DNA from: Cyanophora paradoxa CCMP329 | Taxonomy: Eukaryota; Plantae; Glaucophyta | DNA length: 64,000 bases | Direction of reading: 5' to 3' | NCBI GenBank assembly: GCA_004431415.1 | Contig: QPMI01000679.1 | Coordinates: 1-64,000, forward strand | Position numbers and translations under genes: made by a program | Shown: positions 27,901-49,054 of the stretch, in pieces | How positions within the stretch are numbered: position 1 is the stretch's first letter | Layout: every line of letters begins with the position of its first letter | Notes under the pieces: generated by a model | The model's input: only the letters and a program-made list of their open reading frames with translations | Database searches by the model: none | Told to the model about the DNA's origin: nothing

Positions 27901-29556
27901 TTCCCCTGTCCATCCTCTAAGCTTAAATTTGCGTCGGCAGGTGCCCGGCGGGGCGGTGGTCGAGGGCGCGGTGGTGCCCCGCGGGCGGGGGCGCGCCGCC
28001 GTCCTGCGGGGCGCCCGCCCCGTCGAGGCGCCCCTGCTCCTGACCCCCGCCCACTTCCCCGACCCCCGCGACGGCTCCCCGGGGTACCGCGTCTCCCTCC
28101 GCCCCGCCCCCAACCACCTCTCCGAGGCCGACGAGGCCTCCTTCGTGCGCAAAACAAACACCGCGTTTCTCGAAGAAGTTCTACTTCTGACTGCGGGGGC
28201 AGGGCCTGTGCGCGGCGGGGCGGCCGCTCTCGGACGCCGCCTGCGCCGGCGAGCGCGTCGCCTTCCGCGCCTCCTTCGCCGTCAGCCCCCTCCACCTCCG
28301 CGTGCGCCCGAAATCCAAATTTCCAGCATTTCAGCGGCGTTTCCCCGGAATTCGAAGAGCTTCGTTCGCGATCGCAGGTGGCGCGGGTGCGGCGGGCGGC
28401 GCCGCTGGAGGCGCTGGCGGACGCGGCGGCCTTCGCCGGCGCCGCCTTCGCCCTCGTGGCCCACCTGATCGCCGCCCGCTCCCTCCTCGCCGCCCTCCGC
28501 GGGCACCGCCGCCCCGCCTTCCTCTGGGGCCTCCTCGGCGCCGCCCGCCGCCGCGGCTCCGCGACCCCCGCCCTCGGCTCCCACGCCTCGAATTCGGCCA
28601 AGCCCCGCGGGGGCGGGGGCGCGGCCGGCGTGCCGGTGTACAGCCTCGGGTTCGAGCCCGAGGAGGAGGTCGAGTTCGAGACCGAGGGGCCGCCGCCCCG
28701 CTTCGGGTTCGAGTCCGAGCGGACCCGGGCGGTGCCGCACCCGTTCCCGGACGCGCACGGGCGCCGCGGCGACCCGCTCGACCTCGCGATCGCCCTCGGC
28801 GCCGGCGCCCTCGGCCTCGGCGGGCCGCGGCCGGAGGGGCGCGGGGCCGGAGAGCTGCCGCGGCCCCGCGCCCGCCGCGTCTCCCTCGTCTCGGGGGGCG
28901 CGGCCCCGGCGTCCGGGTCCCCGCGGGGCCGCCGGCACTCCCACTGCGCCCGCGACTCCCCGCGCCTCGCCACCGGCATCGGCGCCGCCCGCCCCTCCTC
29001 CAGAATCAAAGCTCGAGACCCTTTGGATATCGATATCGATGCGGCGCCGGTGCCCTCGGCCGTTGTGCAGCGGCCTCGCAGCCGCTCCCTCGCCCCCTCT
29101 TGGCGCTCTGTCGGCGCTGCTGCTGTCACCGGCTCCGCCCCGCCGCCGGGCGAGGCCAAAGCGGTACCCATCTCTCTGGAGGGCCTCACGATCGAGGTGG
29201 GGACGGGTACGGGCGCCGCCGCCCTCAGCTTCCCGCGGCTCGCCTCCCTCGCCCGCGGCTCGCCCCGCCTCCCCCCCAGCGCCCCCCGGACCCCCGCGGA
29301 CGGTCTCGCGATGGTCCCCGCCTCCCGCGGGCGAGCCGGCGCCGGCGCCCGCACCCCCTCCGCTTCTGCCGCCGCCCCCGGCCGACGCGCCTCGGAGCCT
29401 GGAAGCTTAAGCCCGCGGCCGCCCGCGGCGCCTCCCCTCGCTGTACAGACGCCGGCCCCCGCCGCGGGCCGCTACAGCTTCGCCTTTGGGGACGCGCGCT
29501 CGGGCTCCGCCTTCGCCGACTACCGCCACGTGCACGCCCGCCGCGGCTCCTCCTGA
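12921..29556 (+). CDS. Very large multi-exon membrane/secreted protein: signal peptide, LamG-like segment, dozens of CxxCxxG (ephrin-receptor-like/GCC2_GCC3) repeats, several C-terminal hydrophobic helices and a low-complexity tail (may be more than one gene)
   Basis: Hydrophobic leader AAALLCLLALRLLGSARA; LAELRVWPAALSPAQV motif near 15030; CxxCPxG repeats from ~19100 to 25230; TM-like segments near 25810, 26550 and 28430. Confidence 0.65.
18905..19024. repeat. Intronic minisatellite, 4 x 30 bp
   Basis: Unit tttctggggcgggtccaagctgaattcgag repeated 4 times, one substitution, no spacers. Confidence 0.9.
27462..27751. repeat. Intronic (GCCC/GCCCC)n low-complexity tract
   Basis: About 290 nt composed almost entirely of ccgc/cccgc units. 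Confidence 0.9.
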
Positions 29557-30274
29557 CGGCCCCCGTCGCTTTAATTTCGCTTTTAATTTAATTTGCTGAA
29601 GACCCGAAATCGTAGTCGACGTCGCTCTGGATCTGGATCATCGATATCGGATATTGATACTTAGAAGTTCGTGACTAGATCTAGAGCAGCTCTCATTTTA
29701 ATCCAGAGATTACATATTTCCATCTTTCAGTTATCTGTTCTTTTCAATTGCAAATTCCGCAGCTGCTGCTTGCTTGTAATTTCCATCATGATGATGATCA
29801 TGATCAGCTGAGTCTATGCTATTGCAATCAATGCAATTCAATGGTACCGGTTGCTCACTAAAGCTGTGCCTGCGCTGTCCATGGCCAGAGTCGGATGATA
29901 GAGCTCGAGCATGTGAAGCCTGCAAGTCGGCCCCCGACATGACGCTCGAAATGAAGCGCCGCCGGCGCCGCTAAGATCTAGATCTAGGCTGGTCTGAATA
30001 TCTAGATTTGGCCCCCCCGCGCCGGATCATGATCGGCGGTGAAGCTCTTTTGTTTATTCATTCTACTAGGCTACAGCCAGCTATCAGATCCAGAATGGAG
30101 ATCTAGAATTCGAAAGCGAAAGTGCCGAAAGTTCGGATCCCCGGAGTCGAAATACAATGCCAACCAACTGCACAATGAGTACTAAGCTTGAGGACATGTA
30201 CAATGCTACAAAGAAATGTGCACGTTTAAGTGCGTGAAAGCCAAACGGAAACTGTAAAGAAATCAGTTTCGATA

Positions 30275-32503
30275 TTACATGCGATTGCAAGACCCATGGC
30301 CCATGAAGAGGAAAGCGGCAGTCGCCATGGCCGAAAGAACGATCAGCAGAAGAGATGGGTTGGTATTGTGACCCGAGGAGACGAACGGCCTGTACATATC
30401 GCGATCGACGGCACACGTAAACGGAAGTGCACAAAAGCAAAACATTCCAAAGAAGGGACGTACACAGACGAAGCCGAGGTGCCAGTGGGAATCCAAGCAA
30501 AAGCCTGATGAGGTTTTAATTCCGTTGCAATTTAGTAACGCCTTTGAATTGGATCACCTTTGCGAGCGTCAGATCTGCGAAAGCTCCGTCCGGACTAGAA
30601 ATCTTTAAATCATAAGCAGCTCCAGGGACAAATGCTGCAGATGCCTGCACAGCAAATTCAAACCGCGTTAATTTCAGGAAATTTGGCCCGATCTAGATAG
30701 GATATAAATGCAGTCGAGCACCTGCAGAAGATTGCGCCCCGAAGACTGTCCGCAGTTGGCCGAGAATTTAGGGACCGCTGCAGGATGCGTCAATTGCAAA
30801 GATGGTCGCGAGTTCGAAGTTAGCGACAAGTTCAAATTCGGGCGAAGTCAACCAATGCAACTCACTGAAACGGATCTCTGTCGGGCTGTGAATGCGAGGG
30901 TTTCTTGCGGGGCACTGCACTGTTCCAGACACAATCATGATCAAAATCGTCTTCCCAACTGGTAGATTCTGCGCGCACGAACTACTCAGAAAAGAATTTT
31001 AAGCGCCGGCCGCGGGGTTCGGAATCGGATAAGCAGACCTCTGCGTAAATGATCACATCGCCTCCATCCTGCTCCAGCCGACGTCCCAGCGACGCATTCG
31101 ATCGTTAGAAATTGCCACGAAACACGCTGCAACAGTTAATATATTGCGAGATCTTGAACCCTCACGCACTTGGGGGGTCTGGACTACTGGCTTCTCAAAC
31201 GTAGCAACGCCATCGCTGTTCAGAGAGATTGCAACACCGTTGATGGACGAAGCGCCTGACCCGATTCCCGATATCACAATGCGACTGATATTCTGTGTTC
31301 GTACGCAGACACGCAAATGAGCACAGCACATTACAGGGTCACGGAGTTCAATGATTCAATGATTGCAAGTCGCATTCGCGCACCAGTGCCGCGGGCTTCG
31401 GCGAAGGGGATGGGCTTGCGCCTGCCACAGCAGCTGGAGACGGGATCGGGCTCGGGCTTAAGCTTGGCGCTTGTGACGGGTTCGGGCTCGCGAGTGACGA
31501 CGGCGACGGCGACGGCGGTGGGCTCGGAGTCGCTGCAGACTGAATGCGCATGCAATGTGATAAATTAAAGAGCTCATTGCAAAAATAAATATTAATCAAG
31601 ATTCGCGCGCGCGCGCGCACGCTTGCAATCGGACTCGGAGATGGCGAACTCGAAGGAGACGGCGAAGGCGACGGGCTGGCCTGCGTGGCGCAAGTCCGAA
31701 TGTTAGCTTCAGTAAAAGACTACCCTAGGCCTCGCAGAAGTCGGGAGGGAAGCTCAAGGAACGCACGCTCGCGATATCGATCGGGGACGGGCTCGGGCTG
31801 GCGCTCGGAGACGGGGAAGGGCTCGGGCTCGGGCTCGGCTGCGTCAGACTTATATATGAATATTAAAGAAGACATACATATGTATGGCGTTACGCACACT
31901 GGGCGAGGGCGAGGGCGTCGCTGACACGCAGCGGCCTCCGAAGTCAAACATGGGCGAGCTGCAGGTGCAGCTCGTGTCCGATATGTTCATGTTCTCAGTG
32001 CAAGCAACAGTGCCCGACGCCTGCGGCTTTACATGCAGAATGTCTTGAGATGAAATCTTGATGGGTCTCTTGACTGCTCTTGGTGCGCGAGAAAGGGCTG
32101 AGCGAGAGGGGCGGGGCCCGAGCTCGAGTGTGGCCTTCAACATCTACCGTCGAAGGGGGCAGCATCAACACTTCAAGATCATGATCATGAGCATGCACAT
32201 GATACATGCGCTCACTTTGTTTTCATGGTCATCCTCCAGAACAAGAGAGCATTTCGCCGCCGTACGCGTGGCGCCGGCCGCAGCAGCGCGACTTTCATTT
32301 TCCATAGTAGCGACAAACTTTGATGTTGTCGCCTCAAAGCTGCCGTTGTTTGGACAGACCGCTTGTGCAATTCCGAAATCCGAACTTGGGGATGCGCTTG
32401 CGTTGATAAGAACTGAATTCGCCGCAAACAGGATCGCAGCCAGCGCGGCGACTGCGGCCCCGCGCATTGAGAATGGCATCTCAGATCTAGATATCGATGC
32501 CAT
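30275..32503 (-). CDS. Secreted (Ser-Pro)n-rich surface protein A, probable GPI/TM anchor, possible IPT/TIG-like region
   Basis: Signal peptide MRGAAVAALAAILFAANSVLINASA; Cys-containing N-domain; exons PSPSPSPSPSPSASPSPSP, ASPSPSPSPSSSPSPSP, SAATPSPPPSPSPSS...SPSPSPKP; PTEIRF|TVP...GRNLLQ; C-terminal LLLIVLSAMATAAFLF. Confidence 0.7.
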
Positions 32504-32769
32504 GGTGTAGAGCAATGTCTACAGACTGCAGCACCCGCCGCGGCCGCGGTGTGCAGTGTGCACACCCTCGCCGAGTCGGGCCTTGACTACTAGTAGTGCA
32601 CGCGGTGTGCTGCCCGTCAGTGGGCCGTCACAGGCTCACAGCAGCCGGTGTGCAGTCACACACTGTGACACTGCAGTGTGCACTGTGCACTCTAGATCTG
32701 ATTCACTGAGTCACGACTCCGGCGACTCGGCGAGTCGCGACTCGCGACTCTGATCATTAGTCGCGCACG

Positions 32770-33320
32770 TAGGGGCGTGGACCGGGTCGGGGGGTCGGCC
32801 CGATCGACCCGACCCGCTCGCCCGGCCGACCCGACCGGGTCGACCCGGGTCGGCCCAGGGGGGGTACTTCGATCCCGCCCTCGACCGAAAGAACACCGCA
32901 AACGTGATGAATTACATCAAAAACGTGCTACAATGCAGCAGATACATTATACAGATGCAATAATTGCAATATCTAGATGCATTATGCGCTCCGGAAACGA
33001 ACTTCTGCTGTTTCGGGGGGTACGTATATTCCATCAAGCAGCCACGTCCACTGTACATGTACATCTGCATGCATCTGTGCGACATATAAGTGTAATACAC
33101 ATAGTATGTGTTATATAGACGAAGATCTCAGCATTTATCAACACTTCAGAAAGGTGGAGAACGGTCCCCAAGGGTGTACCCAAGACCCTCCGGCCCGGGT
33201 CGACCCGGTTCGGGCCCGGATCGGGTCTGACCCGGGTCGGGAGGTCGGCCCGATCGACCCGCTTGCCTGGCCGACCCGACCGGGTCGACCCGGGTCGGCC
33301 CGGCCCGGTCCACGGTCCTA
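32770..33320. mobile_element. hAT-type MITE, 551 bp
   Basis: Imperfect TIRs taggggcgtggaccgggtcggg / cccggcccggtccacggtccta; perfect 8-bp TSD cgcgcacg (32762-32769 and 33321-33328); subterminal gacccg/cgggtc arrays. Confidence 0.85.
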
Positions 33321-33495
33321 CGCGCACGCAGTGCCACGCACTGATCATGATGACACGCGGCACTGCGGCAGTACTATAGTATACTCCCGCGGCCGCGATT
33401 CCCGGAGTCCCGCCGTTACGGCGCCGTAGCCAGCCTAAGCCAGCCTTAGCCAGGCCCGTAGGACGCGGCCGTACTGTGGCCCGTACAGGCCCGTA

Positions 33496-34087
33496 CTGTA
33501 AACGTACGAATTTTCGCCAGCGTCTAATTTCGACTATATTCGTCAGACCCTCGCGCTGTCGAATATTTGACGCCGGCGAAATTATGGGGGGGTACCGTCC
33601 CTGCGTCCCTTAGTCGCGCGACTGCGTGTTCCCAGCTCGTCCCTTCACGTCCCCGCGTCTCCCGTCAGCGTCCTCAGTTTGAATTCAAAGCAGCAGCAGC
33701 AGCAGCAGCAGCGCGATGCTCTCCGTCGATCACTGGAAGAGCTTCATCGGCGGCGGCGCGTTCAAGCCTGGCGCGTCGCTAGGGAAGGCGCCCTTGCCGC
33801 CCGGCGTCAGCCCGCTCGAGCTCACGGCGCACGAGATCCTCGTGTGCGAGAAGGAGGGCTATTCCTTGAAAGACCCGGATGCAGACACGGTAGAGAAGCA
33901 GAACGAGCACGTCCGCGTGCTCAAGCAGCTGGTCGCTGACCACGACGCGTCGACCGCTCAGTTCGGCGAAGTCTTAATTTCGACAAAACTTTTTTGTGTC
34001 GAAATCAAGACGCTGTCGGACTAATTTTCGACAGGATTTTCGGGTTTTGTCGAATTAAAGTGCTGTCGGATATTAGTACGTTTACAG
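33496..34087. mobile_element. TA-target (Tc1/mariner-like) non-autonomous element, 592 bp, with an internal ORF fragment
   Basis: TIRs ctgtaaacgtacgaattttcgccagc / gctgtcggatattagtacgtttacag, each flanked by TA; internal ORF 33716-34024. Confidence 0.8.
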
Positions 34088-36258
34088 TACTACGGACCTA
34101 CGGTACTACGGTAACCGTTGAACGTCGGTACTACGGTAAGTAACTTAGTAGTAAGTCCCGCGGTCCCGCCCACGCCTGGCACGGTCCCGGTCCCGCGCGC
34201 GTCTGAGCTAGAGCTGTGCTCGCTGGGGGGGGCCGGGCCCAGCGGCCGCTGAAGCCCGGCGAGCGGCGCCTGTCGCTGGCCCGTCGCTGAGCTGGGGGTA
34301 CCGCCAAAACCTGAAGAAAAACTGCTGGAAACCGACCGAAAACCTATCTGTTCCGTTTAGTTTATTTCGAATTCGTACAAGCTTTTAAGACGCAAATGCA
34401 GATCTAGATTTAATGCTTGGTTCCGCGAGCCATGCGTCAATTTCTGCGGGATAGAGGCCAGCTGCAGGCTGCTTTTAGGCGAAGCGGAGCGCCTGGATGC
34501 TCGAAAACAGTCGAAATTTAGCAAGATTGCTCGGCCACGCCGACTCGTCGCCGAGTCGTCGCCGACCTACGTCGACCATCAGATGAGAAAAAAGCGGGAT
34601 GGAGCTTTTTTTGGCGCCTGTCAGCCATAAAAAACGCTGAGCGAGGAGGCGTCGCTGGCGGAAAACGCCAAGCGTAGCGGCCGCTGGAACCTCGCGAGCG
34701 AAGCGACAACCAGCGACCACAGCCCTAGTCTGAGCGCCGCGGCGGCGCGCGCCGGCGGGCCGCCACTGGGCCAGCCCGGGGCCTGGCAGGCTGCAGGCTG
34801 GCTGCAGCTGAGGCTGCAGCTGGCGCCGCGGCGCCGCGGCGGCGGCAGCGGGCCAGCGGCTCCCGCCGCCGCCGGCGCCGCCCGCCGGACGGCCGCGCCG
34901 CCGCGGACTCCCAGGAGTCTAGCTCGCGGACCCATTGCAAGCTTTTGGGGCCCGGGCCGGTGAAATTAATATTGGGGGCCAATTTGGGGCCGGCCGGCGG
35001 CCGGCGCCGGCCGCGGCGGCGCCGATATCGAGTGCAAATAAACTTAATCGCTCAACCAGGAATTGTAAAACAAATTGTAACCTGAAAAACGAAATCGGAG
35101 TGAGCCGCGTGGCCCGCGTCAGCGGCGTCACCTGCGTGCCGCGCTTATAATTATACAGACCAAAAGTTATACTTATGTTATAGCAATTATCAGACTGACT
35201 TTCATGATTATATTGTTTCTTTCATATTATCGAAATCTCCAACTTTTGCATGGGAAATCGAAATCAAATCCGATCAATTTGAGCAACCGCGACCGATGGA
35301 TCGATATCGAATCATTATCGATCGATCGGAGACTCCCGGTCCGAGTCCCGGATCCGGAGTCCGAGGCTCGCGTCGGAATTGAACCGGACCCCGGGGCCCG
35401 AACCTTTCAAAATTGAACGGCCCAGAATTTGTATCATCATGTATGAAACGGTTTTCTCAAAGTTTCGGTATTTTAAGTTTGTTCAACGTAACGGTTCGCT
35501 GTCCAACGGACGATCGATCGCGACGTCGACATGTGCACGGTCGTAAATTAAATATAGCTTTTATTATTTAATTAAATTTAGCCTAGCACAGGCTAGCAGC
35601 CTGCTACTACTATACTATGATACTATGATAGTAGGCTGCTAGCCTAGTAGTTGCAGCCCTAACTTGCCCTAAGTTGCAGGCCCCACGGGCGGCGGGCCAC
35701 GGCCCACAGGCCCACAGCACCGTGGCACAGGCCGGGGTACCGGACCGTCGGACCACTACCGCTCATCCGGTACCATCGGCCGTCGGGCCAGCTGCAGACT
35801 CTGAGATGCACTGGCACGCCCAGGCTGCCCAGCCGGCCGCGGGCCAGCCCTGGCAGCCCATGGCCAAGCCGCCAATTGCAATTGCAAAGCTCACTCACTG
35901 AGTCAGTGACTGATCCGCGGCGCCCGGCCGAGCTCGAGGCATCACCGCGGTAGACTCTGAGCCTCGGAGAGCTGCAGCTGAGCCCGTGGGCCGTGGCGGT
36001 CACCGGCCCTAGGCCTGACACCGGGTGGCGGCCGGCCAGCTGCAGCCCGGCGGCCTGCAGCTGGCGGCCACCCTCTTGCTATAGCAGCTACCAGTAGTAT
36101 ATATATAGCTACCGCCCCCGGCGGTAGGAGTTCAGGCTGTGCACGCGTGCACGTGTCACAGTGCCACGGTGTATATATAGGTGTGCGCACAGCTACGTAT
36201 ACGTATACAGCTGTATACGTATACAGCTGCAACGCACAGCTGCAGCTGAGCGGGAAAC

Positions 36259-38092
36259 ATGTGGAAGCCCGCATATTTGACTCTTTTGCAATTGGTGATC
36301 ATGATAGGCTTGAGCGTGCGCGTGATCAGCATAACAGTTGCAGCTGGTTCGTACGCGCCGTGTGTGTGACGCGCACGTCTCATTGTATCATATAATAGAT
36401 ACGTATTCGTATCGCGCATGCAGTTCCACGATCGTGAACGCGTTTCTGCGCGCTTTGATGTATGCATATGCGTATACGCAGATAATTTTAGAAGCATACG
36501 AAGCGAAGACTTTGAGAATGAGTACACGAGCGATGTCAAGGATTCTAATTATGATGGGTGATTCATTGGCCTGGCATGTGATGCCTGTGTTGCACATGAT
36601 TTTTAACCGAAACAATCATATACAGATATGCCGACTACGAGGACCCCCAGGTTAGCTATACGCGTGCGTGTACATAGCTATAGGTACCGGTGCTGTCCGC
36701 GATAGGCTGACCGCGACTGAATATGTGCGTGCCTGTTAAACGTTCAGCTTTTCAGCTTTCTAGACTCCGAAGACATTGAACACCTCAACGAGATAGCGGA
36801 TCGGGGTGTCAGTCAAGGTGTTTTCAAGCTGCATCTCAACCCGCATCGTGCGTTCGTTTTTTTTAAAACGCCTGCCACAGCCTCGCGATCTGTGCTTGAG
36901 CTGAAACGCCCGCTCTTTATCCCAGCGCCTTATAATTTGGTCTATTATCACAGATCCTGAGGAGAAGCATTTCAGCAAACATGCTGCAAGGATTCTCAAG
37001 CGTCTGCTTGCAAGGCTCGGGCCTTCGTTCTCCTACACCGACATTCGCAGCAAAATAAGCATCCACACGTGCGTAGATCTAGAGGTGCTCATGGCGTACT
37101 GCGCATGCTGGGCAGCTTGTGCATGTGCATCTTCATCTTTATAAAATATTTTATTAATGATCATCCACGCGCGTACGCGTACGATTGTGATCGCGTCGAT
37201 TCTGCAGAGTGAACAGGGAAAATCAGAAGCCAACCGTGCGTGCCCATGGCCATGATATCGCATAAGTTAATTTGATATTTCTGGACAATATATATATGCC
37301 CTCTACTCTTCACGCTAGCCCTCTCTGCCCTCTTTTTTCTTGCCTTCTAATATTCATGCGTGCACAGGATGGAAGCAGCAGACCTTTCGCATTCGACACC
37401 GATTATCACAACGATGCATGCTGCTTTGAAGGTGCCCATGTTCCGAGAAGTTCAGGATCTTATGTATCATCCAAGCTTGAGCTTTAATTCTTTTCGCGCA
37501 CATACGTTCCCAAAGATTGCGCATCGTGGTATGAGCAGTACAGCGATGGGTTACAACGCCGAGTGGGCGTTATAATCTGGTTGAACTCCGACTACGAGGG
37601 TGGCCACACGACATTTCCGGTGTGCGACAGCTGTCTTCTGAATCCGCGGAATAATGTCTAATTATCTTGCGCATGCAGAATATAGGCCTAAGCATCAGGG
37701 GCCCAACAGGATGGGCTCTCAAATTCAACCTTCTACAAACTGTTCGTCAAATTCTTTCTTTCCCCTCTCATTAACAACCTGGCCGCGGCCCGTGCATTAT
37801 AAAATTTAATTTGACTGGTTCAAGGGCACGCTCTTCTGTCACGACTCTGCCGTGCACAATGGAGAGCTGGTGACGAAGGGTACTAAGAGGTACTTCCGAA
37901 ATTCTGCCTTCAGCTTCATCAATGATCATGAAATGCGATTAATCTCTGTGATGCGATGCCAGAATACTGGTGGTTTTCATCAACGCGCCACCGGAATGGA
38001 TGCAGGCGTTGCCTGGTCCCAAAGGCTACAATGCGTCCTTCGCCTTGAATCGGCGCAGAAGTCTCACGTACGAGACGTATAATTCTTTGTGA
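36259..38092 (+). CDS. Prolyl-4-hydroxylase-like 2OG/Fe(II) oxygenase, paralog 1
   Basis: Signal MWKPAYLTLLQLVIMIGLSVRVISITVAA; LFSFLDSEDIEHLNEIADR; DYHNDACCFE|DCASWYEQYSDGLQRRVGVIIWLNSDYEGGHTTFP|NIGLSIRGPTGWALKFNLLQT|GTLFCHDSAVHNGELVTKGTKR|ILVVFINAPPEWMQALPGPKGYNAS. HxD...H...K catalytic set present. Confidence 0.85.
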
Positions 38093-38409
38093 TTCATAAT
38101 TAACTTCTATCCAGCAAATGAGGAAGGCAAAGTAGTGTTATATAATTACGTGCACGCATGATCATGATCAACAAGGTGCCTGCTCGAGCAGGCGAGGCGA
38201 ATTCGAAGCCGGATCGGAGCTGCGTGTGCGCGAACTCAGTGATTCCTAATATTAATTAATATGTATACGCAACATATAATACCCCCGGCCGCGGGCCCCT
38301 CCCCGAAGAAGGCATTTGCTGCGCTGCGCATGCTGGCATTTCTTCGTAGCTATAGAATTCTAATATCAACATTGATCTGGAAGTGGCGTTTCTTTATAGA
38401 ATTCTAATA

Positions 38410-40264
38410 TTAATATTGATTTGGAAGTGCTACACGGACGTCTGCAGCACTGCGACTCTCGAGCTTGTACACAGCAAGAGTTGCGTTGTACCCGCCAGGA
38501 CCGGGAAGGGATTCCATCCAGGCTATTGGCGCAAGGAATATGATTGTGAGAATCCTGTCGCGTATTTATGAGGGACAGGTGAGGCAAACGCTAGCTACAG
38601 CCCACAACGGCGCCAGCAGACCTCTTGATGCCTCGAGTGACTTCCTCTCCCCTGTGGATGGCGAGATCGTCACAGAATAACGTGCCCTGTAGATGTGTGC
38701 GGGCGAACGGTTTAGCTGTAGTTGGGATGAAGGAGACCATTGATATCGAGTTTACTGGCTTACCTTCGTAAGCAAATCGAATTTAAGGGCCCATCCTGAT
38801 CGAGATCGCCGCGATCATTCATGATCAGCTGTTACATTTGCGTTTGTGTGCTAAATTGTACGTTCTATCACGCACCCACGGGGCCCTTGACGCTGAGGCC
38901 AAGGTTGACGAACTCCGTGTGCCCGCCGTCGTAGTCCGTAGAAAGCCAAACAACGACGCCCGTTCTCCACTGTCGGCCATCTCCGAACCTGTGCATACTT
39001 CAAATTCGAGCTTGGGCGGGGCGCGTGCCGGGGGTTCCGGTGAAGAGCGAACCGGCGATACCATTCGCCGCAGTCCTCCTCGCAACAGGCGTCATTGTGG
39101 TACTTGGACTATGTGTACGACGACAGTCCGACAGTCAGGTCGCGATCGAAAAATCATAACGCTGCAGCTGACTGCAAAACGCGCGCTGTGGAAAATTAAA
39201 AGCGGACCGTCACATGATGCTTTTCTTCTGGGTCGATGCTGTACATGTCCATGACATTGTTAGGTGTTTATATATGTAATTCATTTCGGGGGATATCTAT
39301 TCGCTAGTCATTGAGCGCACGTTATAATAGACGCGTAGCTGCGAAGATCGTCGTAAACGTGGCTTGAGTCCAATTTATCTGCAATTCTTTGCAATGCATC
39401 GCGAGCTTGTGCGTCCAATCCGTTGTCTGTGACAGTGCGTTACGTTAGCCACTGCAAACACATGTCGTTCAAAAATCCGCCATTCGAATTCTTTTAGCAT
39501 GTTTGGTGTACGCGCGCGCGCACAATGCGGATTGAACCACAGCACATGGGAGCCTTTTGTGAGCTCGCTATCGGCGAGCGTGTTAAGGTAGCTCACGTCA
39601 TCCTCGGACAAGACGCTGAAGAACTGCGCATCCGCGGCATGCGCAGTTCAATATATATTTTATATAGGAATAGCACCATAGTGAGCCGTCAAAATAATTT
39701 ATTTGAAATTCGCAAGAAGCTTAAGAGTGCGACGGTACGGGCCTCAGGGTCTCCATAGTCCGCGTCGCCGGAGAGGCCTTCGAATACGCGATTGTGTCCA
39801 TGAGGCCGCTCGATCGCGAGCTCCTGAAGCTCGAGCTCGCCGGACGCATGAGGGGCGCCGTTCATTTCTGCGGTGCAGGGAGGCGCATAATTATAACATG
39901 GCCAGCTCCTCTCCAGTTTAGAACCCCGGACAGCCGGCGCCATGCATGCGCATGCATATGCATATATTTGCTACGCACCGTATAAGTACGCATCGCGATC
40001 GTGGTCGTGTACATTTACATGTTCGTTCGCGTAATCATGTGCGCAGCATGCGCACACTATAGCTAGTACTATCCACGCCGATGCCAGCAGGGCTTGAAGG
40101 AAAGGTAACGATCGCGACGTCGACAGCTGCAGCCGGCGCAGCGGCCGCTCGAAGACTAATGCTCGGAAACTCGTACGCGTGCACGTGGAACCGTCGATCG
40201 CATATGCATGCAAATGCGTGCCTGTGCAAATTTTGCTCGCTTTGAAGCGCATTTGTGTGCGCAT
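38410..40264 (-). CDS. Prolyl-4-hydroxylase-like 2OG/Fe(II) oxygenase, paralog 2
   Basis: Hydrophobic LPFLQALLASAWIVLAIVCACCA; FFSVLSEDDVSYLNTLAD; KYHNDACCEEDCGEWYRR|FGDGRQWRTGVVVWLSTDYDGGHTEFVNLGLSVKGPV|GWALKFDLLTK|GTLFCDDLAIHRGEEVTRGIKR|ILTIIFLAPIAWMESLPGPGGYNAT. Confidence 0.85.
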
Positions 40265-40887
40265 GCCTGAGGCCCAGGCTGAGGGCTAAAACCTATTAGG
40301 CTAAAGCTTATCAGCTGCCGCGAGTGCGCCGGCCTCGGGTCGCGGACTCGCGGCCCGCGGGCCGGCCGCCATCAGTGGCCCATCACTGCGCGCGCCGTGC
40401 ATGACTGCGGGACCCGCGGGCGTGCCCGGGCCCCGGGAGTCTGCGCACTACGGCACTGCGGCATGCGCATGCCGGGCCATTGCCGGCCCACTGGGCCAGT
40501 GCACGCGCGGCGTATACGTATTACGTACCGGTACAGTAACGTACTACGGTACGTGGCAGGCTGGCACCGTGGCCCGTGGGCCGTGGGCCGTACGCGTGGG
40601 CCGTCCACTGCATGGCCATGGGCCATGGGCCACGTGGCACCGGCCCACTGGGCCAGTGGCACGTGCGCACTGTGATAGGCAGCATCATAGGCTGACAGAC
40701 AGAGACAGTGGCCTGTCAGAGACTCAGAGGCTGTCACTGGCTCAGGCTGACACTGGCGTTACACTGGCCGGGCGTACGGTACCGTACAGTCCGTACTACG
40801 GTAGTACGCGTACGGTAGACTACCGGTAACTCAGAGGCGGTACTAGGTACTCTCTGAAACAAAATTAAACTTATAATTTTTAATTAC

Positions 40888-41061
40888 CCGCGCTTTAGCG
40901 CAGTGGTATAAGGTCGTGCTACGACCTCCCGGATTCCCGGGTTCGGTTCCTGCTGTTTCCGCTACGTTGTACTTCGAATCCCTGTGATTCCCGATACCGT
41001 GACTTGTATCCTCGTTGTGTACTACGAGTGGGCACGCCCACCGTAGAAAAAAAAAAAAAAA
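40888..41061 (+). mobile_element. tRNA-derived SINE-like element
   Basis: Pol III A-box-like tagcgcagtgg (40896-40906), B-box-like ggttcggttcc (40940-40950), 3' stem-loop ctacg(a)gtgggc-ac-gcccaccgtag, then A15 (41047-41061). No tRNA acceptor stem and no clear TSD. Confidence 0.55.
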
Positions 41062-42053
41062 GTAGTAAAAATTAATTCGAAGGACGAAGGAGTCGGAAGG
41101 AATCGGAAGAAGGACCCGTGCCGCCATGCATATATATATGGCCAGCGGCCCAGCGCCGGCCCGCGTCGGGCCGCGGCCGGGCCGTGCCGCGGGCCGCCGG
41201 GCCGCGGCCCGCGGCGCGCGGCCCGGCCGCCGGGCCGGCCGGGCCGCCCGGCCCGCCCCGGCCCGCCCGGCGGCGGGCCGGCGGCCCGGCGTTTGGCCAG
41301 CTGCACTGGCAGCACTGGCAGGCTGTGGCAGCTGCACTGCCGCAGACAGGCCCTGACTCAGTGAGGCCCGCTCAGAGGCCGGCGCAGGCCGCTCTGGCCC
41401 CGCACTGGCCCGCAGTGCGCATGCCATGATGCGGCAGGCTGCAGCCTGCCAGGCTGCGCGCAGGCTGCAGCCTGCCAGCTGCAGGGCCAGTGCAGGCCCG
41501 GCCGCCCGGGCTGCAGCCCCAGCTGCAGGCCTAGGGCCCAGACTGGCCCCCAGTCCCTATAGTCCCTATAGCTAGTAGAGCCCCGCCCTCGGAGAAGACG
41601 TACCATACTGGACGGTCCGACGTTGGCGCGTACCGCGGCGCACGTATCCGTAATACGTGTTCGCCGCTAATACGGTCATGATAATTGCCGCTGAGCGCTG
41701 GGCGCTAGCTATGCACTGCAGCATGCATATGCGCGCGGCAGCGCTCTGCGGGTCTGCAGCTGCACGCGCGGGCAGCGCGGAGTTGACGCCGCCTGCGGCC
41801 GACGCCGACTCGCCCGGCGGCCGTCGAGTCGCCTATCGCGAGTCGGTCACGAGTCGGCCCGCGGTAACGCGTACACGCAGCTGCAGCCGGTCGCGATCGC
41901 CGTTGACGCTGTCACACTGTGCACGCCCGCCGCGGCGCCGCCGCCCGGCCGTCACTGCCCGTCAGCTGCCCGTATACGTACGCGTGCATTATGCATATGT
42001 ACACACTGTGACAGTGTTGTAGGCAGCGCGCGGTCGCGCGCGCGGCGCTGATC

Positions 42054-43738
42054 ATGAGCGGCGCCGCACACGCCGTAGGTTATCAGCCCGTACGTGTTTG
42101 TATCCTCGTCACAAGTGCTGTGGCCATTGTTCTTCATCATCATCACGTACGCGTATTCGTTCAGGTGCACATTTGAATGAATTTTCGTTAAAGACGCTGC
42201 GCATGCTGATCATGAGCTCCGGATCCGGGCCCACGTCTGAACAGCCCAGCGCTTGCCGCCACAGGCGCGGACAACAGATACGCTTCGCGCCCTTATGCCG
42301 AGGAGGAAGTAAAAGTGCGATCGCAATTTCTTCCTGGCCCCGATCGATATCGCGAGCTCCGAGCGATCTCTGCGGCTGACGCATGTACGCATATGGATCG
42401 ATAGCTCTTCAGGCTCCTTCCTCTCGGCGATGTCGACTTCATTTTGCAGTGGGCATTCGCAAATGCCACCAATATTGAAGAGAGGCACGTGCACAAATTC
42501 TTCAGCCCGCATGGTAAAACCCTTAATTTTTATAAGTTTATAAGCTGCTGTGTTCTTCTCCGAGCTGAAGGCTCAAGGTTGACCCTTGGTGCACTTGTGT
42601 AGATCCTCGACTCCCTGCCCGATTTCGCTCAGCTATCGAAGCGCTTTTACGACGGGTGGGCCCCGATTTTGCGTACGAAGACCTCGCGCCCCTTGCAGGC
42701 ATCTATTCTCAGCGGTCAGCGGCGGATATATAGCTAGAATCCCGCCATTCCCTTGCAGGCAGTGCAGCGCGCGGCTGCTAATTCAACGCACACTCTTCTG
42801 CACACACGCAGAGCCGGCCCAGGCGGCGTTCACTCTCAGGTACGCCGCATGCTCTCTTTGCACTGGCCCGATAATACTAATATTGCCATAATTAATATTG
42901 TTTCTGCTTTCTTTGTTTCCCAGTACCACTGCGATGCTTGCTGCCACCCTGATTGCACGGAGTGGTACCGGACGATATGGTGAATTCGAAGCCCACTGCC
43001 ACGCCGTCCGCTTTCATCGACATCCGTTCCTTGTTTAATTTACTCATCGAATGACGAATCGAAGGGCTATGGAGGGTCGACAGTATCGTACCGTCTTCCA
43101 CGTTTATCTGAATGATGATTTCGACGGCGGGCACCTCGAGTTTCCGGTGCGTCACGCTTTGTATACGTACTCTGAAACGGTCGATCGATCGAGACCAAGT
43201 TAATTGAGCAAACGTCGGGCGAAACAGAACCTCGGGCTCAGCGTCAAAGCCCCCACTGGCACGGCGTTTATATATTTGTATTGCGGCCAAATATTCGCGG
43301 CTAATTATGAGAGATTTTGAGCTTGCAGGCTGGGTAGTCGCGTTCACATCATTGGCGCAGGTGCCTGTTAAACTGATGAACGTTTGAATGACGATAGAAT
43401 ACGTCTTCATGTACATAACGCCTGCTCAGAACTCGACCTTTTGTCATGAGCACGCCATCCACCGTCTTGAAAACATCAAGAAAGGAACGAAAAAGTGAGC
43501 TAGCGCTGGGCCACACGATTTCCCTGCTGCTGCAAACACATTTCTTTTAATTTATGTGTCTGCGAACTCGAGCTTACTGGATTGCATGCGCAGGTGGCTA
43601 GCTCTGAAAAGTTTGGCTCCAATTTCGTGGATGGAAAGTCTGGAAGGGCCCCCTGGGTTCAACAGCACTTACGTATCGGAGAGGATGGCAGAGAGACCGC
43701 ACGCGCGCATTCCAACTCTTTCGGAACTTTACAGATAA
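42054..43738 (+). CDS. Prolyl-4-hydroxylase-like 2OG/Fe(II) oxygenase, paralog 3 (start uncertain)
   Basis: YHCDACCHPDCTEWYRTIW|AMEGRQYRTVFHVYLNDDFDGGHLEFP|NLGLSVKAPT|GWVVAFTSLAQ|NSTFCHEHAIHRLENIKKGTKK|WLALKSLAPISWMESLEGPPGFNST; N-terminal hydrophobic VRVCILVTSAVAIVL. Confidence 0.8.
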
Positions 43739-43882
43739 TTTATAACACACCGTATACGTAGTACCGCATGCGCATGCGCGCGTTCACATAGTGTGAACGA
43801 CATTTTCAATTCTAGGTCCGGGTCGCAACGAGTCCATAACAGCACACATGCCTCTAGCTATAGTACAACGCATGCGACTCGC

Positions 43883-43977
43883 AGCGATTCGCAGGCAGCC
43901 GGCGCCCGCAGCCGGCGCCGGGCCGAATGTAGATCTAGCGATTCGCACGCAGCCGGCGCCGGGCCGAACGTAGATCT
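43883..43977. repeat. Short imperfect tandem duplication
   Basis: agcgattcgca(g/c)gcagccggcgcc...gggccgaa(t/c)gtagatct occurs twice. Confidence 0.7.
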
Positions 43978-45387
43978 GCAGGCATAACGCCATGGGGCGC
44001 ACGGCGCATCTCACGTGGTGCATCGCACGTGGCCATGGGCGGGAGCGGGCGCACGGGGGGGCTACAGCTGCAGCTGGGAGGGGGGTTGGGGGGGGTGGGG
44101 TGGGTGTCGGGAGGTCGGGGTGTCGGGGACGGAGGGGGGAGGGGGGTCGGGCGATTACAAATTTTCAATGTTAATGCGCTTTGAAGTGTAATTATAAGCC
44201 ACTACGCCTGATCATGAGTTACAGTCACATTTGGTTTCACATTCCAGAGAGAGAAGGGGGCCGAGACGTGCACGTGGTCAGGGGGGGGTCGCAGGCGCTA
44301 GGGAGCTGAAGGGGGGCTCCCGGGGGCGGACTGGGCGCGCTGGCCATGGGGCCCGCTGGGGAGCGCTGCGCGTGTTGGGGCCGAGGCGGGCGGGCGGCAC
44401 GGGGCCGGGGGGCGGGACCGACGTCGACACCGTTCTGGCGCTCGCTGATCATGAGCTGCCAGGCTGCTCAGCTTCATCACGCGTACGGCCGCCCTGCGGC
44501 GGGCGCAGCGGGGCGAGGTGCGCCACAGTCGCCGCGCTCGCTGGCCCTCGAGCTCGCCCGCCGCCGGCTGCGTACCGTTGGGTGGCCATGGGGGGAGCCG
44601 GGGGAGCCCGCAGGGGTACGGTCCGGCGGGGGCGGGAGATCTAGAGCCCGCAGGGGGGTGGGGAGCCTGCAGGGGCCCACTGTGGGCCCGCCGGGGGTCC
44701 GCCGGGGCCGGGGTCAGGGGGCCCATTGGGGACCAGGGCCCTGCCGGGGGCCGACAGGTTGGGCCTACAGCGGGCATGGCCGTCGACGTCGTACGCGTGG
44801 CATGGCCATTCACGGTATGCATGGCCACTCCATGTGCCACTTTGGCGCATGAATTGCAGAGCTGCGTGTCGAGGACGTCATAATTACGCCGTACTGGTGG
44901 TACAGCTGCGCGGACTCGGACGAATTCAAATTCGAGCTAAATTAATATTCGAGCATTTTTGGGGAGGGTACCTTTTTTGCCTCCACGATTTTCAGAGTTT
45001 CACTGACCGATACGGCCCCCCGCCCCCGTCTCATGATCATGATCACGTGGGACGGTCGGGGACCTGGGCGACACTAAGGGCGACACTAAGATCATGATCA
45101 TGAGGCTAGGGGTTGAACGTTAACAAGGGTATATATAGAGAAAGACTGCTCAAAGGCTGACTTGGGGCTTGCAATTGCAATTGGAGCCGGAGGGGCTCCT
45201 GAAAGGCCGAGGAGCGCGGCGAGGCTGCGCTGGACCTTATCCTTGGCGCATCAGCATGTTTTATTATATTAACCGAAATATACACTATAATTATCAGTTG
45301 CAATCCGATATTGTACGATATCCGCTAGCTATTGCGCATATATGCTAGCTATAGCTATAGTAGCTTGCCAAGTTGCAATTGAACAGG

Positions 45388-46255
45388 TTACGACCGCAGC
45401 AGCTCTTCGCAGGCCATCGCGAGCGCCGCGGCGATCGCGAAGGCGCCGAAGGAGAATCCCACGTACACCCAGCGCGCCGGGGAGGTGGAACTGGCGGCGC
45501 CGCGGTTGCGCCATATGAAGACGTCGTCGCCGGTCGCGTACGTCTTGTTAGGGTCGTAATCGGATAAAGAAGGGTCGTAATAAGGGCTGGCAACTTGGAA
45601 CTGTTCGCGAGATGTGTGAGCCACGTGTATATATACGTACTTCTGTATTCGATGTACAGCGTAGAGCCTCGGAGAGCGGCCGGATCTGGAACGCACCGGC
45701 GTTGGCGTCGGCAAGGGCCTCCGCGTTGGCGTGGGCGCGGGCCTCCGCGAGGGGTTCGGGTCCTGACTCGGGATCGGGCGTCTGGTGGGGCTCGGCCGCG
45801 GGCTCGGGCTCGGGCTCGGGCTTGGGCTAGGGCTCGGCCTCCTGCTGGGGCTCGGCGACGGGGTGGCGGATGCGGGGGCGGCTTGCGAGCTCGAGTTTGA
45901 ATTCGACGGGGGCAACGCGGTGGGCGTCGCGGCCGGCCCGAGACCTGGGATCTCCGACGGGGCTGGGCTGGGCGACGGGCTCGGAGTTGGAGTCGGAGAT
46001 GGGCTGCCGAATTCGAATATTCGATGGATGCAAGTAATCAGCTCATATAGCTCAATGAGCATCCGCAGACAAATGCACTTACGTCGCCGTGGCCGGGATG
46101 GGTTGTACGCAGACGCCGGTTTGGAATCCGGTTGGGAAGCACAGTTGAAATCCATACGGTATACAATCGGCACTGTTGGTGCAGCCTATGGCACCTACGC
46201 CGCCCAAGAGGGCGGCCGCCAGCACTGCGACGAGGACGCGCCCGATCATGACCAT
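45388..46255 (-). CDS. Secreted (Ser/Thr-Pro)n-rich surface protein B, probable GPI anchor, 3 exons
   Basis: Signal MVMIGRVLVAVLAAALLGGVGA; 4-Cys module CTNSADCIPYGFQLCFPTGFQTGVC; stalk PSPTPTPSPSPSPAPS...PSPSPSPSPSPRPSPTRRP; tail NRGAASSTSPARWVYVGFSFGAFAIAAALAMA. Confidence 0.85.
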
Positions 46256-46268
46256 ATGCTTCGAATTC

Positions 46269-46568
46269 GTAAACGTACGCGTATCGGCCATGAGCGCTCT
46301 GGTTATCGTAGCTATAGTATTGTTATCGTATACGTAGCTATAGTATGCATATGGCGGAATTCGACCAGGCGGCACTGCGACAGAGCAGCCCGGCGGCCTG
46401 ACAGCCTCAGCTACGTGCTTGGTAAACGTACGTATACGCGTACGCGTATCGGCCATGAGCGCTCTGGTTATCGTAGCTATAAAATGGTTATCGTAGCTAT
46501 AGTATGGCGGAATTCGATCGCGACCAGGCGCCACTGCGGCAGAGCAGCATATAGCTAGGCCTGACAAG
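46269..46568. repeat. Diverged tandem duplication (~140 bp x2) upstream of surface protein B
   Basis: Copies 46269-46404 and 46422-46568 share tatcggccatgagcgctctggttatcgtagctata and further blocks; they differ largely by short palindromic insertions. Confidence 0.85.
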
Positions 46569-47166
46569 TCGTGCAAGTATACGTACGAGTTGAACCGTGC
46601 AACGCGGTATACGTAATCATTGAATTTCTGCGGTACGTACTACACGAGCAGTATACTAGTTGCAGAACTTCGGATTTTACATCGATGTTGGTGATCACAT
46701 CACTGCTTAACATCGATATCATGTCACAGTGTCATGATAATATCACTGCTTGCGACGCCGATCGAATGTTAATATGTTTTGGCCAGTTTTCATTGTTTTT
46801 TCGCCGGGAATTCGAATCGGGGCGATGGAAAAGACGAAGCCGGCGCCGGTTTTTCATAGAAACTTGAAAATTGAACTTTTCAAGTCTCCACATAACATGC
46901 TAAGAGGCTAGTAGGAGTCTATAACCGCTGAGCTAGGAGCCTAGGACCCGGCAAAGACCCGAACTTCGGAGTTCGAACTTCGGATCGGAGTTCGAAATTC
47001 GCGATCGGAGTTCGAACTTCGGAGTTAACGTTAACGTTTGAACGTTCAACGGTTTAATTTACCGTATACGTAGTACTTCGAGTTTGAACTTGGAAAACTT
47101 AACGTACGCGGCGCGTGGATTATCATTCCACAAAGCCCGAGTCACCGAGTCATATCGTGTCCGACG

Positions 47167-47625
47167 GTCACTCGAAGACGTCGACGGGGACATCTTAATT
47201 AATAAGCTTGATCCATAGCCACGTGTGCGGCCGCGGGCGGATGATTCGAGTGAGGCCGCGTAAAAGGGCGTAAAAAATTCGAGCCGCCGGCGCCAGCGCT
47301 AGCACTCGGCGCGCGCGCCAGCGATCGCGACCGGCGCGCTAGCATGCGCATGCGTGTCGAGGACCTTATATATAATTACGCCACGCATGCATGCATGCGT
47401 GCACGTGTGATCTCTAGATCTGAGTCCCTGAGTTAGATTTTCAGAGTCCTAGTTTTAATTTATTCGACATTTCTTATACGAGTCACTCGAAGACGGCCGG
47501 GGAGATTTTGATCTATAGCCACGTGGAAGGGCGGATGATTCGAGTGAGGCCACGCATAAGGGCGTAAAAATTCGAGCCGCCAGCGTTCGAATTCGGCGCG
47601 CCAACGATCGCGACCGGTGCGATAG
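47167..47625. repeat. Decayed duplicate (47167-47343) of the exonuclease gene 3' end (47482-47625)
   Basis: Shared blocks gtcactcgaagac, atagccacgtg, gggcggatgattcgagtgaggcc, aagggcgtaaaaa, ttcgagccgcc, cgatcgcgaccgg. Confidence 0.85.
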
Positions 47626-49054
47626 CTGTAGCGCTCGGCGCGAGTTCGAAGAGGGCGGGGTCGAGGCGGGCGCCTTCGCCCCCGCGGCCGCCCGGCGCCT
47701 GCCGGTCGTTCGCCTCCGGCGCGTCTCTGCCCGCCGCTCCCTCCCTCAGAGAATTTCAAAGGAGAGCGGGTGCTCTGGGTAGATGTAATTAAATCTAAAT
47801 CTACAGCAAGACCGGACCGCACCGGAAGAGGGCGACGTAGCGGGCGGAGGCGCGGCGGGCGAGCGCGAGGTCCTGCGCCTGGAAGCCGGCCGTGAGGTGG
47901 TCCGCCAGTGGCCCCAGGAGCGCCACGTCATAAGCCGCGTACCTGCTCAGATCAGGTCAGATCAGATCGGATCGAAATTTGATCTGGATCTAATTTATAG
48001 ATCAAATCGCGCACTTGACGAGGTCCTCGCCGAGGGGCCGCCGCTCCCAGAGCCGCAGGTCGGAATCGAAGCGGGCCGAGACGCTGTCCTTCAGCCGCTG
48101 AGCCTCCTCGAGGCCGCGCATGAGGCCGGAGTCCGCCAGCACGCGCTTGAGGCCGGCGACGTAGTCGGGGAGCCGGCCCCGCCGCCCGTCCATGCGCCAC
48201 TTCAGCGCGTGGCAGAGCTGCGTGTCGAGGACGTTCTGCAGCGCCACGCCGTGCTGGTGGTACAGCTGCGCGCTCGGGCCAGACGCAGGCATCAGTTGCA
48301 GGCGAATTCAAGTTCAAGAAATATTCCAAAGTTCGAGTAGACGTCTTCAAAACATTTTATAATTTATCCGCGCGCACCGCGTCGCTGTCCCGCCTAGGGC
48401 CTGCAGTCGTGGAAGAGTTTGAGCACGGATGGGTCGGCCAGGATACGGGCGAGGCCCTGCAATAATTCGAATTCGTTCGGATCGCAGCATGCATGTGATC
48501 ATGATAAAGTTCGATTTCGCGCAAGAGACGTTCGCAATTTGCAAGCTTAAGCTTCAAGCGGCTGCAGCCGATCGCGCGCAAGGCCTAATTATATAAATCG
48601 GCTGATCGCGCGCAGCCGATCAAGTTCCGAAGCTCAATTTCGCGCAAGGCCTAAATCATTAGAGCAGCCGAGGGCGCCCGCACCGTGGGGAGGCGCCTGA
48701 GGGCGACGACATCGAAGGCGTACACGCGCAGGGACGGGTCCTCCGGGTCGGCCACCTGCTTCCCCCCGCCCGCACGATCAGATCTAGATCAAGGCCTAGA
48801 CCGTAAACGTAGGCCCGCCCTGTGGCCGAGCTCGAGGCCGCGCGCGCCTGGACGAGGCAGAGGCGCCCGCGGCGGCTGAGGTCGACGCCCTCGCAGTCCA
48901 CCGCGAGCCGCGCGGCGCCCCTCAAATTCCCCAGCGCAATCTCCGCCACGTCCGGCGTGTCGATCAGGTGGAAGAGCCCGTCCGCGGGGGCGGAGATCGA
49001 GGGCCCGCCGGGTTTGCGGGCGGAGACCACGCGAGCGCTGTAGACGCCCGCCAT
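47513..49054 (-). pseudogene. DEDDy 3'-5' exonuclease (EXD1/Egalitarian-like), apparently disrupted
   Basis: ExoI LAVDCEGVDLSRRGRLCLVQ; ExoII KLFHDCR[7-nt insertion with stop]RDSDA; NVLDTQ; WERRPL...YAAYDV (ExoIII). Insertion cctaggg at 48393-48399 frameshifts the ORF. Confidence 0.65.

Follow-up and report, generated by a model that had tools for sequence, protein, structure and literature searches.

Three divergent genes of the prolyl 4-hydroxylase family in a tandem array within a low-GC island of Cyanophora paradoxa

Three paralogous oxygenase genes between two Ser-Pro protein genes

Three lineages have primary plastids, and the glaucophytes are one of them. We analyzed a stretch of 64,000 nucleotides from the glaucophyte Cyanophora paradoxa CCMP329 (GenBank assembly GCA_004431415.1, contig QPMI01000679.1, positions 1 to 64,000 of the forward strand), referred to below as the window. 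The window has a GC content of 70-78% outside an island of lower GC that extends from ~29.5 to 48 kb. A first-pass annotation, made by a model from the sequence alone, had placed five genes in this island: three prolyl 4-hydroxylase (P4H)-like oxygenases dependent on Fe(II) and 2-oxoglutarate (2OG), here called g1, g2, and g3, and two genes for Ser-Pro (SP)-rich proteins, here called A and B. All five genes stood up at their positions, with frame-consistent models and with tblastx blocks in each pair of oxygenase loci. The genes g1 to g3 form a tandem array of a new, divergent, and unannotated P4H subfamily that resembles the P4Hs of giant viruses. The reading that we favor, and to which we give reasonable if not high confidence, is that they are three anciently duplicated, intact, lineage-restricted, and very divergent oxygenases of the P4H (P4Hc/PF13640) family that likely hydroxylate prolines of Pro-rich secretory proteins. 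We found no account of hydroxyproline or of P4Hs in Cyanophora in the literature searched.

29500..48000, no strand: low-GC island; genes of 47-61% GC and AT-rich spacers, interrupted by spacers of 63-72% GC
36259..38092, plus strand: g1, predicted P4H-family oxygenase; 10 exons, 273 aa; from tblastx blocks and a hand-built model
36259-36346, 36482-36557, 36626-36650, 36748-36847, 36954-37068, 37376-37431, 37516-37619, 37679-37741, 37825-37889, 37963-38092, plus strand: exons of g1
37407-37409 and 37413-37415, 37855-37857, 37885-37887, 38030-38038, plus strand: sites of g1, in order the His and Asp of HxD, the distal His, the Lys, and the N-glycosylation sequon
38410..40264, minus strand: g2, predicted P4H-family oxygenase; 10 exons, 353 aa; transmembrane (TM) anchor near residue 55
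40264..39979, 39867..39734, 39623..39524, 39426..39321, 39238..39214 (mini-exon), 39108..39053, 38988..38876, 38795..38764, 38686..38622, 38554..38410, minus strand: exons of g2
39099..39097 and 39093..39091, 38656..38654, 38626..38624, 38487..38479, minus strand: sites of g2, in the same order
42054..43738, plus strand: g3, predicted P4H-family oxygenase; 219 aa from the third exon to the stop
42054-42146 (or -42164), plus strand: exon 1 of g3, with start codon and hydrophobic run
42405-42513, 42603-42714, 42812-42839 (mini-exon), 42924-42979, 43065-43146, 43228-43258, 43329-43360, 43430-43494, 43594-43738, plus strand: later exons of g3
42927-42929 and 42933-42935, 43460-43462, 43490-43492, 43661-43669, plus strand: sites of g3, in the same order

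Exon models were built by hand from three-frame displays, and reading frames, stop codons, hydropathy, and substitution rates were computed locally. Pairwise tblastx of the three oxygenase loci returned the same six conserved blocks in every pair, and these blocks fell only in presumed exons. The modelled coding sequences of g1, g2, and g3 (the last from its third exon) have a length that is a multiple of three, contain no internal stop, and end at the predicted stop codon; overall, the three models correspond to proteins of ~250-353 aa. Introns of g1 to g3 measure 59-307 nt and are GT-AG in all cases but one. Many begin with GTGCG(T/C), a donor present in 12 of the 34 modelled introns of A, B, and g1 to g3 (five of six in gene A), and this looks like the species-typical donor consensus. 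We also considered that g2 might be a pseudogene, with an in-frame TAG before the exon encoding HxD and a phase mismatch, and rejected this: a 25-nt mini-exon, also found in g3, restores the frame.

The His-x-Asp motif, the distal His, and the Lys ten residues after it (His+10) are invariant in g1, g2, and g3 (alignments A9 and A3), in agreement with the HxD...H and P4H-type Lys first read at the locus. The C-terminal sequon (NAS/NAT/NST) was likewise recovered in all three copies (alignment A2), and it is absent from P0002, a fragment of a fourth copy described below. Hydrophobic N-terminal leaders, also claimed at the outset, were found as the highest 19-residue hydropathy windows of g1 and g2, starting at residues 9 and 55, respectively, and as a 15-residue hydrophobic run in exon 1 of g3. 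Each protein would thus carry an N-terminal hydrophobic anchor like that of type II membrane P4Hs. A secretory location, with the catalytic domain in the lumen, is plausible given these anchors, the conserved cysteines, and the sequon. Intron positions had been described as common to all three genes, and this was true in part: g2 and g3 share the mini-exon (25 and 28 nt), an intron directly before the HxD His codon, and last exons of 32, 65, and 145 nt, whereas g1 has no intron before that codon and has two introns of its own.

An old array under purifying selection

Over 96 aligned codons, the proteins of g1 to g3 share 38-54% pairwise identity. The proportion of synonymous differences (pS) is 0.67-0.85, which is saturated, compared to a proportion of nonsynonymous differences (pN) of 0.31-0.44, giving pN/pS ratios of 0.39-0.62. 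Because synonymous sites are saturated, the duplication must be old, and we conclude that g1 to g3 are old duplicates that have been kept under purifying selection. The local duplication proposed in the first-pass annotation therefore stands as an ancient tandem array and not as a recent event.

A search of 1.84 billion representative proteins with a profile of the last exon returned a single public homologue, the 72-aa EukProt model tig00001177_g7362.t1 of Cyanophora paradoxa (P0002); the proteins of g1 to g3 were not in this collection. P0002 is a fourth member of the family, located on a different C. paradoxa contig (tig00001177), and it also keeps the Lys at His+10. It crosses three of our modelled exon junctions exactly as modelled and so provides independent support for the splicing models. 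The P0002 sequence was combined with exon rows into a 73-column profile (A7), which replaced MAFFT alignments (A4 to A6) in which exon fragments had been misplaced; a protein search with A7 again returned P0002 only. The absence of g1 to g3 from the public proteome is probably due to gene finders tuned to genes of 70-80% GC, which genes of 50% GC escape, and it suggests that annotation of the low-GC compartment is more widely incomplete.

Exon-level profiles support membership in the P4H family

A scan of viral contigs for the GG-H-T-x-F pattern of one exon led to open reading frames (ORFs) that encode PF13640 proteins. The ORF at one such locus (L010) has an N-terminal anchor; of the 120 homologues retrieved for it, all that are long enough contain PF13640, and the Joint Genome Institute (JGI) names many of them prolyl 4-hydroxylase. 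A local hidden Markov model (HMM) of 43 P4H-annotated PF13640 proteins was run against the whole window, translated in pieces in six frames. The six top-ranking matches were the two catalytic exons of each of g1, g2, and g3, at collinear model positions and with the distal His and the Lys aligned; E values were 4e-8 to 4e-5 for the GG-H-T-x-F exons and 0.35-1.4 for the His...Lys exons.

Comparison of exon profiles with a P4H alignment (A8) by hhalign gave the same picture. Five profiles fell collinearly on the A8 template, the last three of them contiguously: exon 3 at positions 60-79 (E = 0.016), exon 4 at 107-117 (E = 0.18), the HxD exon at 140-155 (E = 0.0097), the exon after HxD at 156-182 (E = 1.8e-12, 97.7%), and the last exons, represented by A7, at 183-231 (E = 7.2e-10, 96.5%). 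The catalytic residues of g1 to g3 fall on the invariant A8 columns H130, D132, H203, and K213. When A8 was compared with the PDB, nine of nine matches were prolyl 4-hydroxylases, including Chlamydomonas P4H-1 (E = 8e-55), the Bacillus anthracis enzyme, human C-P4H alpha-2, the enzyme of virus PBCV-1, and P4H-TM. A Lys ten residues after the distal His, as ligand of the 2OG C5-carboxylate, is typical of P4Hs, while most other 2OG oxygenases have an Arg. Given that the exon profiles are collinear and that A8 matches only P4Hs among solved structures, we accept membership in the P4H family for g1 to g3, as the profiles and the placement of the catalytic H, D, H, and K support.

Several results weigh against this assignment. 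Ten single-exon pieces and P0002 gave no relevant match when searched against Pfam, and A7 gave none at all. Searches of the PDB with single exons and P0002 (phmmer) and with A7 returned chance matches only, with E values above 1. Furthermore, A8 was reached through the motif of one exon, so that the scores of that exon are partly circular; A7 had no part in the choice of A8, and its score is not circular. Three further analyses of P0002 added nothing: features from the ESM Atlas were noise (transposase and aldolase fragments), an AlphaFold model made with A7 had a predicted local distance difference test score (pLDDT) of 48.7, which is too low for fold comparison, and tblastn against phage records found nothing.

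Closer likeness to giant-virus P4H-like proteins than to plant P4Hs

We compared the array with two sets of P4Hs, a viral-type clade and the P4Hs of Viridiplantae, and between these two the closest detectable relatives by profile score are the giant-virus P4H-like proteins. Scored with A7, the viral-type clade reached a median of 12.4 bits, compared with 4.2 bits for 120 Viridiplantae P4Hs, and the last exons reached an hhalign E value of 7e-10 against the former and 2e-3 against the latter. When the same exon profiles were aligned to 35 Viridiplantae P4Hs, the E values were 6.8e-5 and 2.1e-3 and the HxD exon could not be placed. The best-matching clade (P0005-P0110; PF13640 proteins of ~230 aa) counts >100 members in marine metagenomes when clustered at 90% and includes IMG/VR contigs. 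On one 330-kb ENA contig (L011), a TM-anchored P4H-like gene (10001-10693) lies near a capsid gene of nucleocytoplasmic large DNA viruses (NCLDVs), a mimivirus-type poly(A) polymerase, and DUF5899; because this member adjoins NCLDV genes, the clade belongs at least in part to giant viruses.

The likeness extends to overall design. Members of this clade and g1 to g3 carry a single P4H catalytic domain behind an N-terminal anchor, are of similar overall size, and share HxD...H, the Lys at His+10, and a D-Y-(E/D)-G-G-H-T-x-F block. The two groups also have a cysteine pattern in common: two Cys closely follow HxD, and a third lies six residues ahead of the distal His. Plant-type P4Hs lack this arrangement. 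The algal genes differ in having 8-10 introns, in the longer N-terminus of g2, and in a C-terminal extension conserved among them, A-P-x-x-W-M...G-P-x-G-aromatic-N, for which the viral proteins show no counterpart; exon by exon they are also too divergent for Pfam.

Two kinds of enzyme with known activities belong to the same family. Chlamydomonas Cr-P4H-1 (PDB 2JIG, 2JIJ, and 3GZE) and the type II membrane P4Hs of plants (the AtP4H family) share with g1 to g3 the family, via A8, as well as the N-terminal anchor, a domain that in g1 to g3 too would lie in the lumen, and the catalytic tetrad, but direct similarity is weak (the hhalign values given above; median 4-10 bits). Their substrates in the secretory pathway are the Ser-Pro and poly-Pro motifs of hydroxyproline-rich glycoproteins, and Viridiplantae P4Hs are, to our knowledge, the only group for which hydroxylation of Ser-Pro motifs is known. 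The viral prolyl 4-hydroxylase A085R of PBCV-1 (PDB 5C5T) is a small member of the same family and one of the PDB matches of A8, the route by which its likeness to g1 to g3 is drawn; its known substrates are Pro-Ala-Pro-Lys repeats, unlike Ser-Pro. We know of no member of the giant-virus clade with a known substrate. The closer likeness to giant-virus P4Hs weakens the step from Ser-Pro hydroxylation in plants and algae to g1 to g3, so that the bridge which the first-pass annotation had drawn to these enzymes is less firm than it had seemed.

These observations raise a testable question of gene exchange between giant viruses and algae. It is conceivable, though we hold it only tentatively and think it on balance unlikely, that g1 to g3, and perhaps the island, derive from an acquired P4H gene of Nucleocytoviricota that later gained introns and was duplicated. 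The scores, the anchor, size, and cysteine pattern, the NCLDV and IMG/VR contigs within the best-matching clade, and the position of the genes within a low-GC island all favor such an origin. However, the comparison covered only the viral-type clade and the Viridiplantae P4Hs, and the island yielded no viral hallmark gene. Moreover, the 8-10 spliceosomal introns of each gene have the GTGCG(T/C) donors also found in A and B, meaning that any transfer would be old. The direction may also have been the reverse, with viruses taking the gene from such protists, and an exchange in either direction would fit either reading of the function.

Genes A and B as candidate substrates

The two genes that flank the array were also recovered as first described, that is, as Ser-Pro proteins with signal peptides and hydrophobic C-termini.

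30275..32503, minus strand: gene A, Ser-Pro-rich secreted protein; exons 1-7 frame-consistent, at least 315 aa; 3' half sketched only
32503..32216, 32056..31898 (start uncertain), 31838..31767, 31680..31621, 31539..31384, 31292..31170, 31126..31039, minus strand: exons 1-7 of gene A
45388..46255, minus strand: gene B, single-pass surface protein; three exons (46255..46083, 46003..45697, 45600..45388), 230 aa

Gene A encodes a signal peptide, an N-terminal part that contains Cys, and 30 SP dipeptides spread over four short exons, all of which end in a GTGCG(T/C) donor; nonrepeat exons follow. Its last ORF ends at a stop codon at 30277..30275, after a hydrophobic tail that follows small residues and resembles a glycosylphosphatidylinositol (GPI) signal. 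Gene B encodes a signal peptide, a small N-terminal domain with four Cys, and a Ser/Thr-Pro stalk of ~100 aa that contains 15 SP dipeptides. A TM helix lies near residue 205 and is followed by a tail of 6 residues. The donors of gene B are GTAAGT and GTGCGT. Neither gene contains a Pfam domain.

We asked what may be concluded from the position of these genes. The first-pass annotation had gone on to propose a dedicated module in which g1 to g3 are co-regulated with A and B and the enzymes act specifically on these two proteins to build a special, perhaps stage-specific, coat of hydroxyproline (Hyp) glycoproteins. We consider this rather unlikely. Of the 12 runs of three or more (S/T-P) repeats in the window, 9 lie in A and B, which directly bracket the array; the pairs A/g1 and g2/g3 are head to head and could share promoters; and the five genes lie in one compositional island. 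On the other hand, given the age of the paralogues, no visible event brought the array together with A and B; no convincing element is common to the spacers; and the fourth family member, P0002, is on another contig. Ser-Pro stalks are not confined to A and B either: a receptor-like gene left of the island (21418-22254 and 25689-26414, plus strand), with Cys repeats of the Ephrin_rec_like/TNFR type (E = 9e-11), holds one of the remaining runs, a short TPSPSP stalk immediately ahead of a TM-like segment. Substrates would therefore be dispersed, and with such stalks in other surface proteins of the window, adjacency alone carries little weight.

As in clustered enzyme-plus-substrate genes and biosynthetic gene clusters, genes for modifying enzymes here adjoin genes for candidate substrates. 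Those clusters are defined by co-expression, conserved synteny, or a genetic link; the likeness of the present array to them lies in the positions of its genes. We treat A and B as candidate substrates and not as demonstrated dedicated ones. If the link is real, it would make this locus an enzyme-substrate gene cluster of a kind that is unusual in eukaryotes.

Predicted activity of the encoded enzymes

The proteins of g1 to g3 appear to be built like small membrane-bound P4Hs, with a short cytosolic N-terminus, one hydrophobic anchor, and a catalytic domain of ~200 aa. This domain would face the lumen of the endoplasmic reticulum (ER) or Golgi apparatus, which the conserved cysteines and the C-terminal N-glycosylation sequon fit. 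Iron would be held by the His-x-Asp...His triad and 2OG by the P4H-type Lys ten residues after the second His. The likeliest activity, as predicted from these features, is the hydroxylation of prolines in Pro-rich secretory proteins. The enzymes may plausibly serve the whole class of surface proteins with (Ser-Pro)n stalks, among which A and B are only candidates. Thus g1 to g3, together with the fourth copy represented elsewhere by a fragment, are candidate writers of proline hydroxylation on Ser-Pro surface proteins.

The genes might instead be decaying or silent relics, or might hydroxylate something other than peptidyl proline, an alternative that we regard as improbable. It draws on the absence of g1 to g3 from the public proteome, where the fourth copy appears only as a fragment of 72 aa, and on the model of g3. 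That gene needs one GC-AG intron (donor at 43259) at a place where g2 has a GT donor, and its 5' part is uncertain: a candidate linker exon ending at 42308 lacks a canonical partner, and in an alternative, canonical model exon 1 is joined straight to 42405, in frame. In addition, the residues that we take to contact the peptide in Cr-P4H-1 (a Tyr three residues before the first His, an Arg after GGQ, and a Trp six residues after the Lys) look patchily conserved here, so that the substrate may differ. Against decay, open frames extend over 9-10 exons and all four catalytic residues are kept despite saturated synonymous divergence. Likewise, gene finders trained on genes of 70-80% GC would be expected to miss genes of 50% GC. 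Lastly, a combined scenario strikes us as very improbable. In it, the glaucophyte lineage domesticated a P4H gene that had been exchanged with giant viruses; the gene gained introns, expanded in tandem, and came to be linked, both in position and in transcription, to two dedicated (Ser-Pro)n surface proteins. The outcome would be a writer-plus-substrate cluster for a coat of hydroxyproline glycoproteins that annotation missed within a low-GC compartment.

The island, its spacers, and neighboring genes

All of A, g1, g2, g3, and B lie within one compositional island, the left border of which is sharp, at ~29.5 kb, and the right border gradual. At 500-bp resolution, the island is a GC mosaic, with genes at 47-55% and some spacers at 63-72%. 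One spacer separates g2 and g3.

40265..42053, no strand: spacer between g2 and g3, which are head to head; mostly 58-72% GC

This spacer is possibly a shared promoter region. We also considered a promoter element shared by the two head-to-head spacers and rejected it: the sole match between the g2-g3 spacer and the A-g1 spacer (34739-34820) is an 85-nt, low-complexity match of 72% identity, which is probably not meaningful. A collagen-like (G-X-Y)n gene in the GC-rich spacer at 44-45 kb was likewise rejected, being GC-rich noise only.

The A-g1 spacer contains an 84-nt GC-rich repeat twice (32773-32856 and 33218-33301, 445 nt apart), built from short palindromic units of the GACCCG/CGGGTC type. 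In the same spacer, a segment of ~600 bp (33493-34090) lies between 42-nt inverted repeats that are 79% complementary and may be a small element with terminal inverted repeats (TIRs); within it, a stop-free stretch of ~110 aa (33683-34021, plus strand) has no Pfam match. Around gene B, a direct repeat of ~95 nt (44829-44919 and 48189-48277; 79% identity, E = 2e-17) stands on both sides of a 3.3-kb segment that holds the gene and could be the trace of a segmental insertion or duplication. Two further pairs of short, nearly identical direct repeats lie immediately upstream of gene B, 46274-46330 with 46439-46495 (95%) and 47235-47276 with 47529-47570 (93%).

Outside the island, the left flank contains an exon of an ion-transport family (6090-6995, minus strand; E = 7e-10), and a leucine-rich-repeat gene (LRR_8, E = 2e-31) lies to the right (49838-53685, minus strand). 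Approximately 8 kb right of the island, an exon at 55782-56639 (plus strand) matches the TPT (triose-phosphate/nucleotide-sugar transporter) family (E = 4e-7), a family-level assignment that would be relevant to glycoprotein synthesis if the gene encodes a Golgi sugar transporter.

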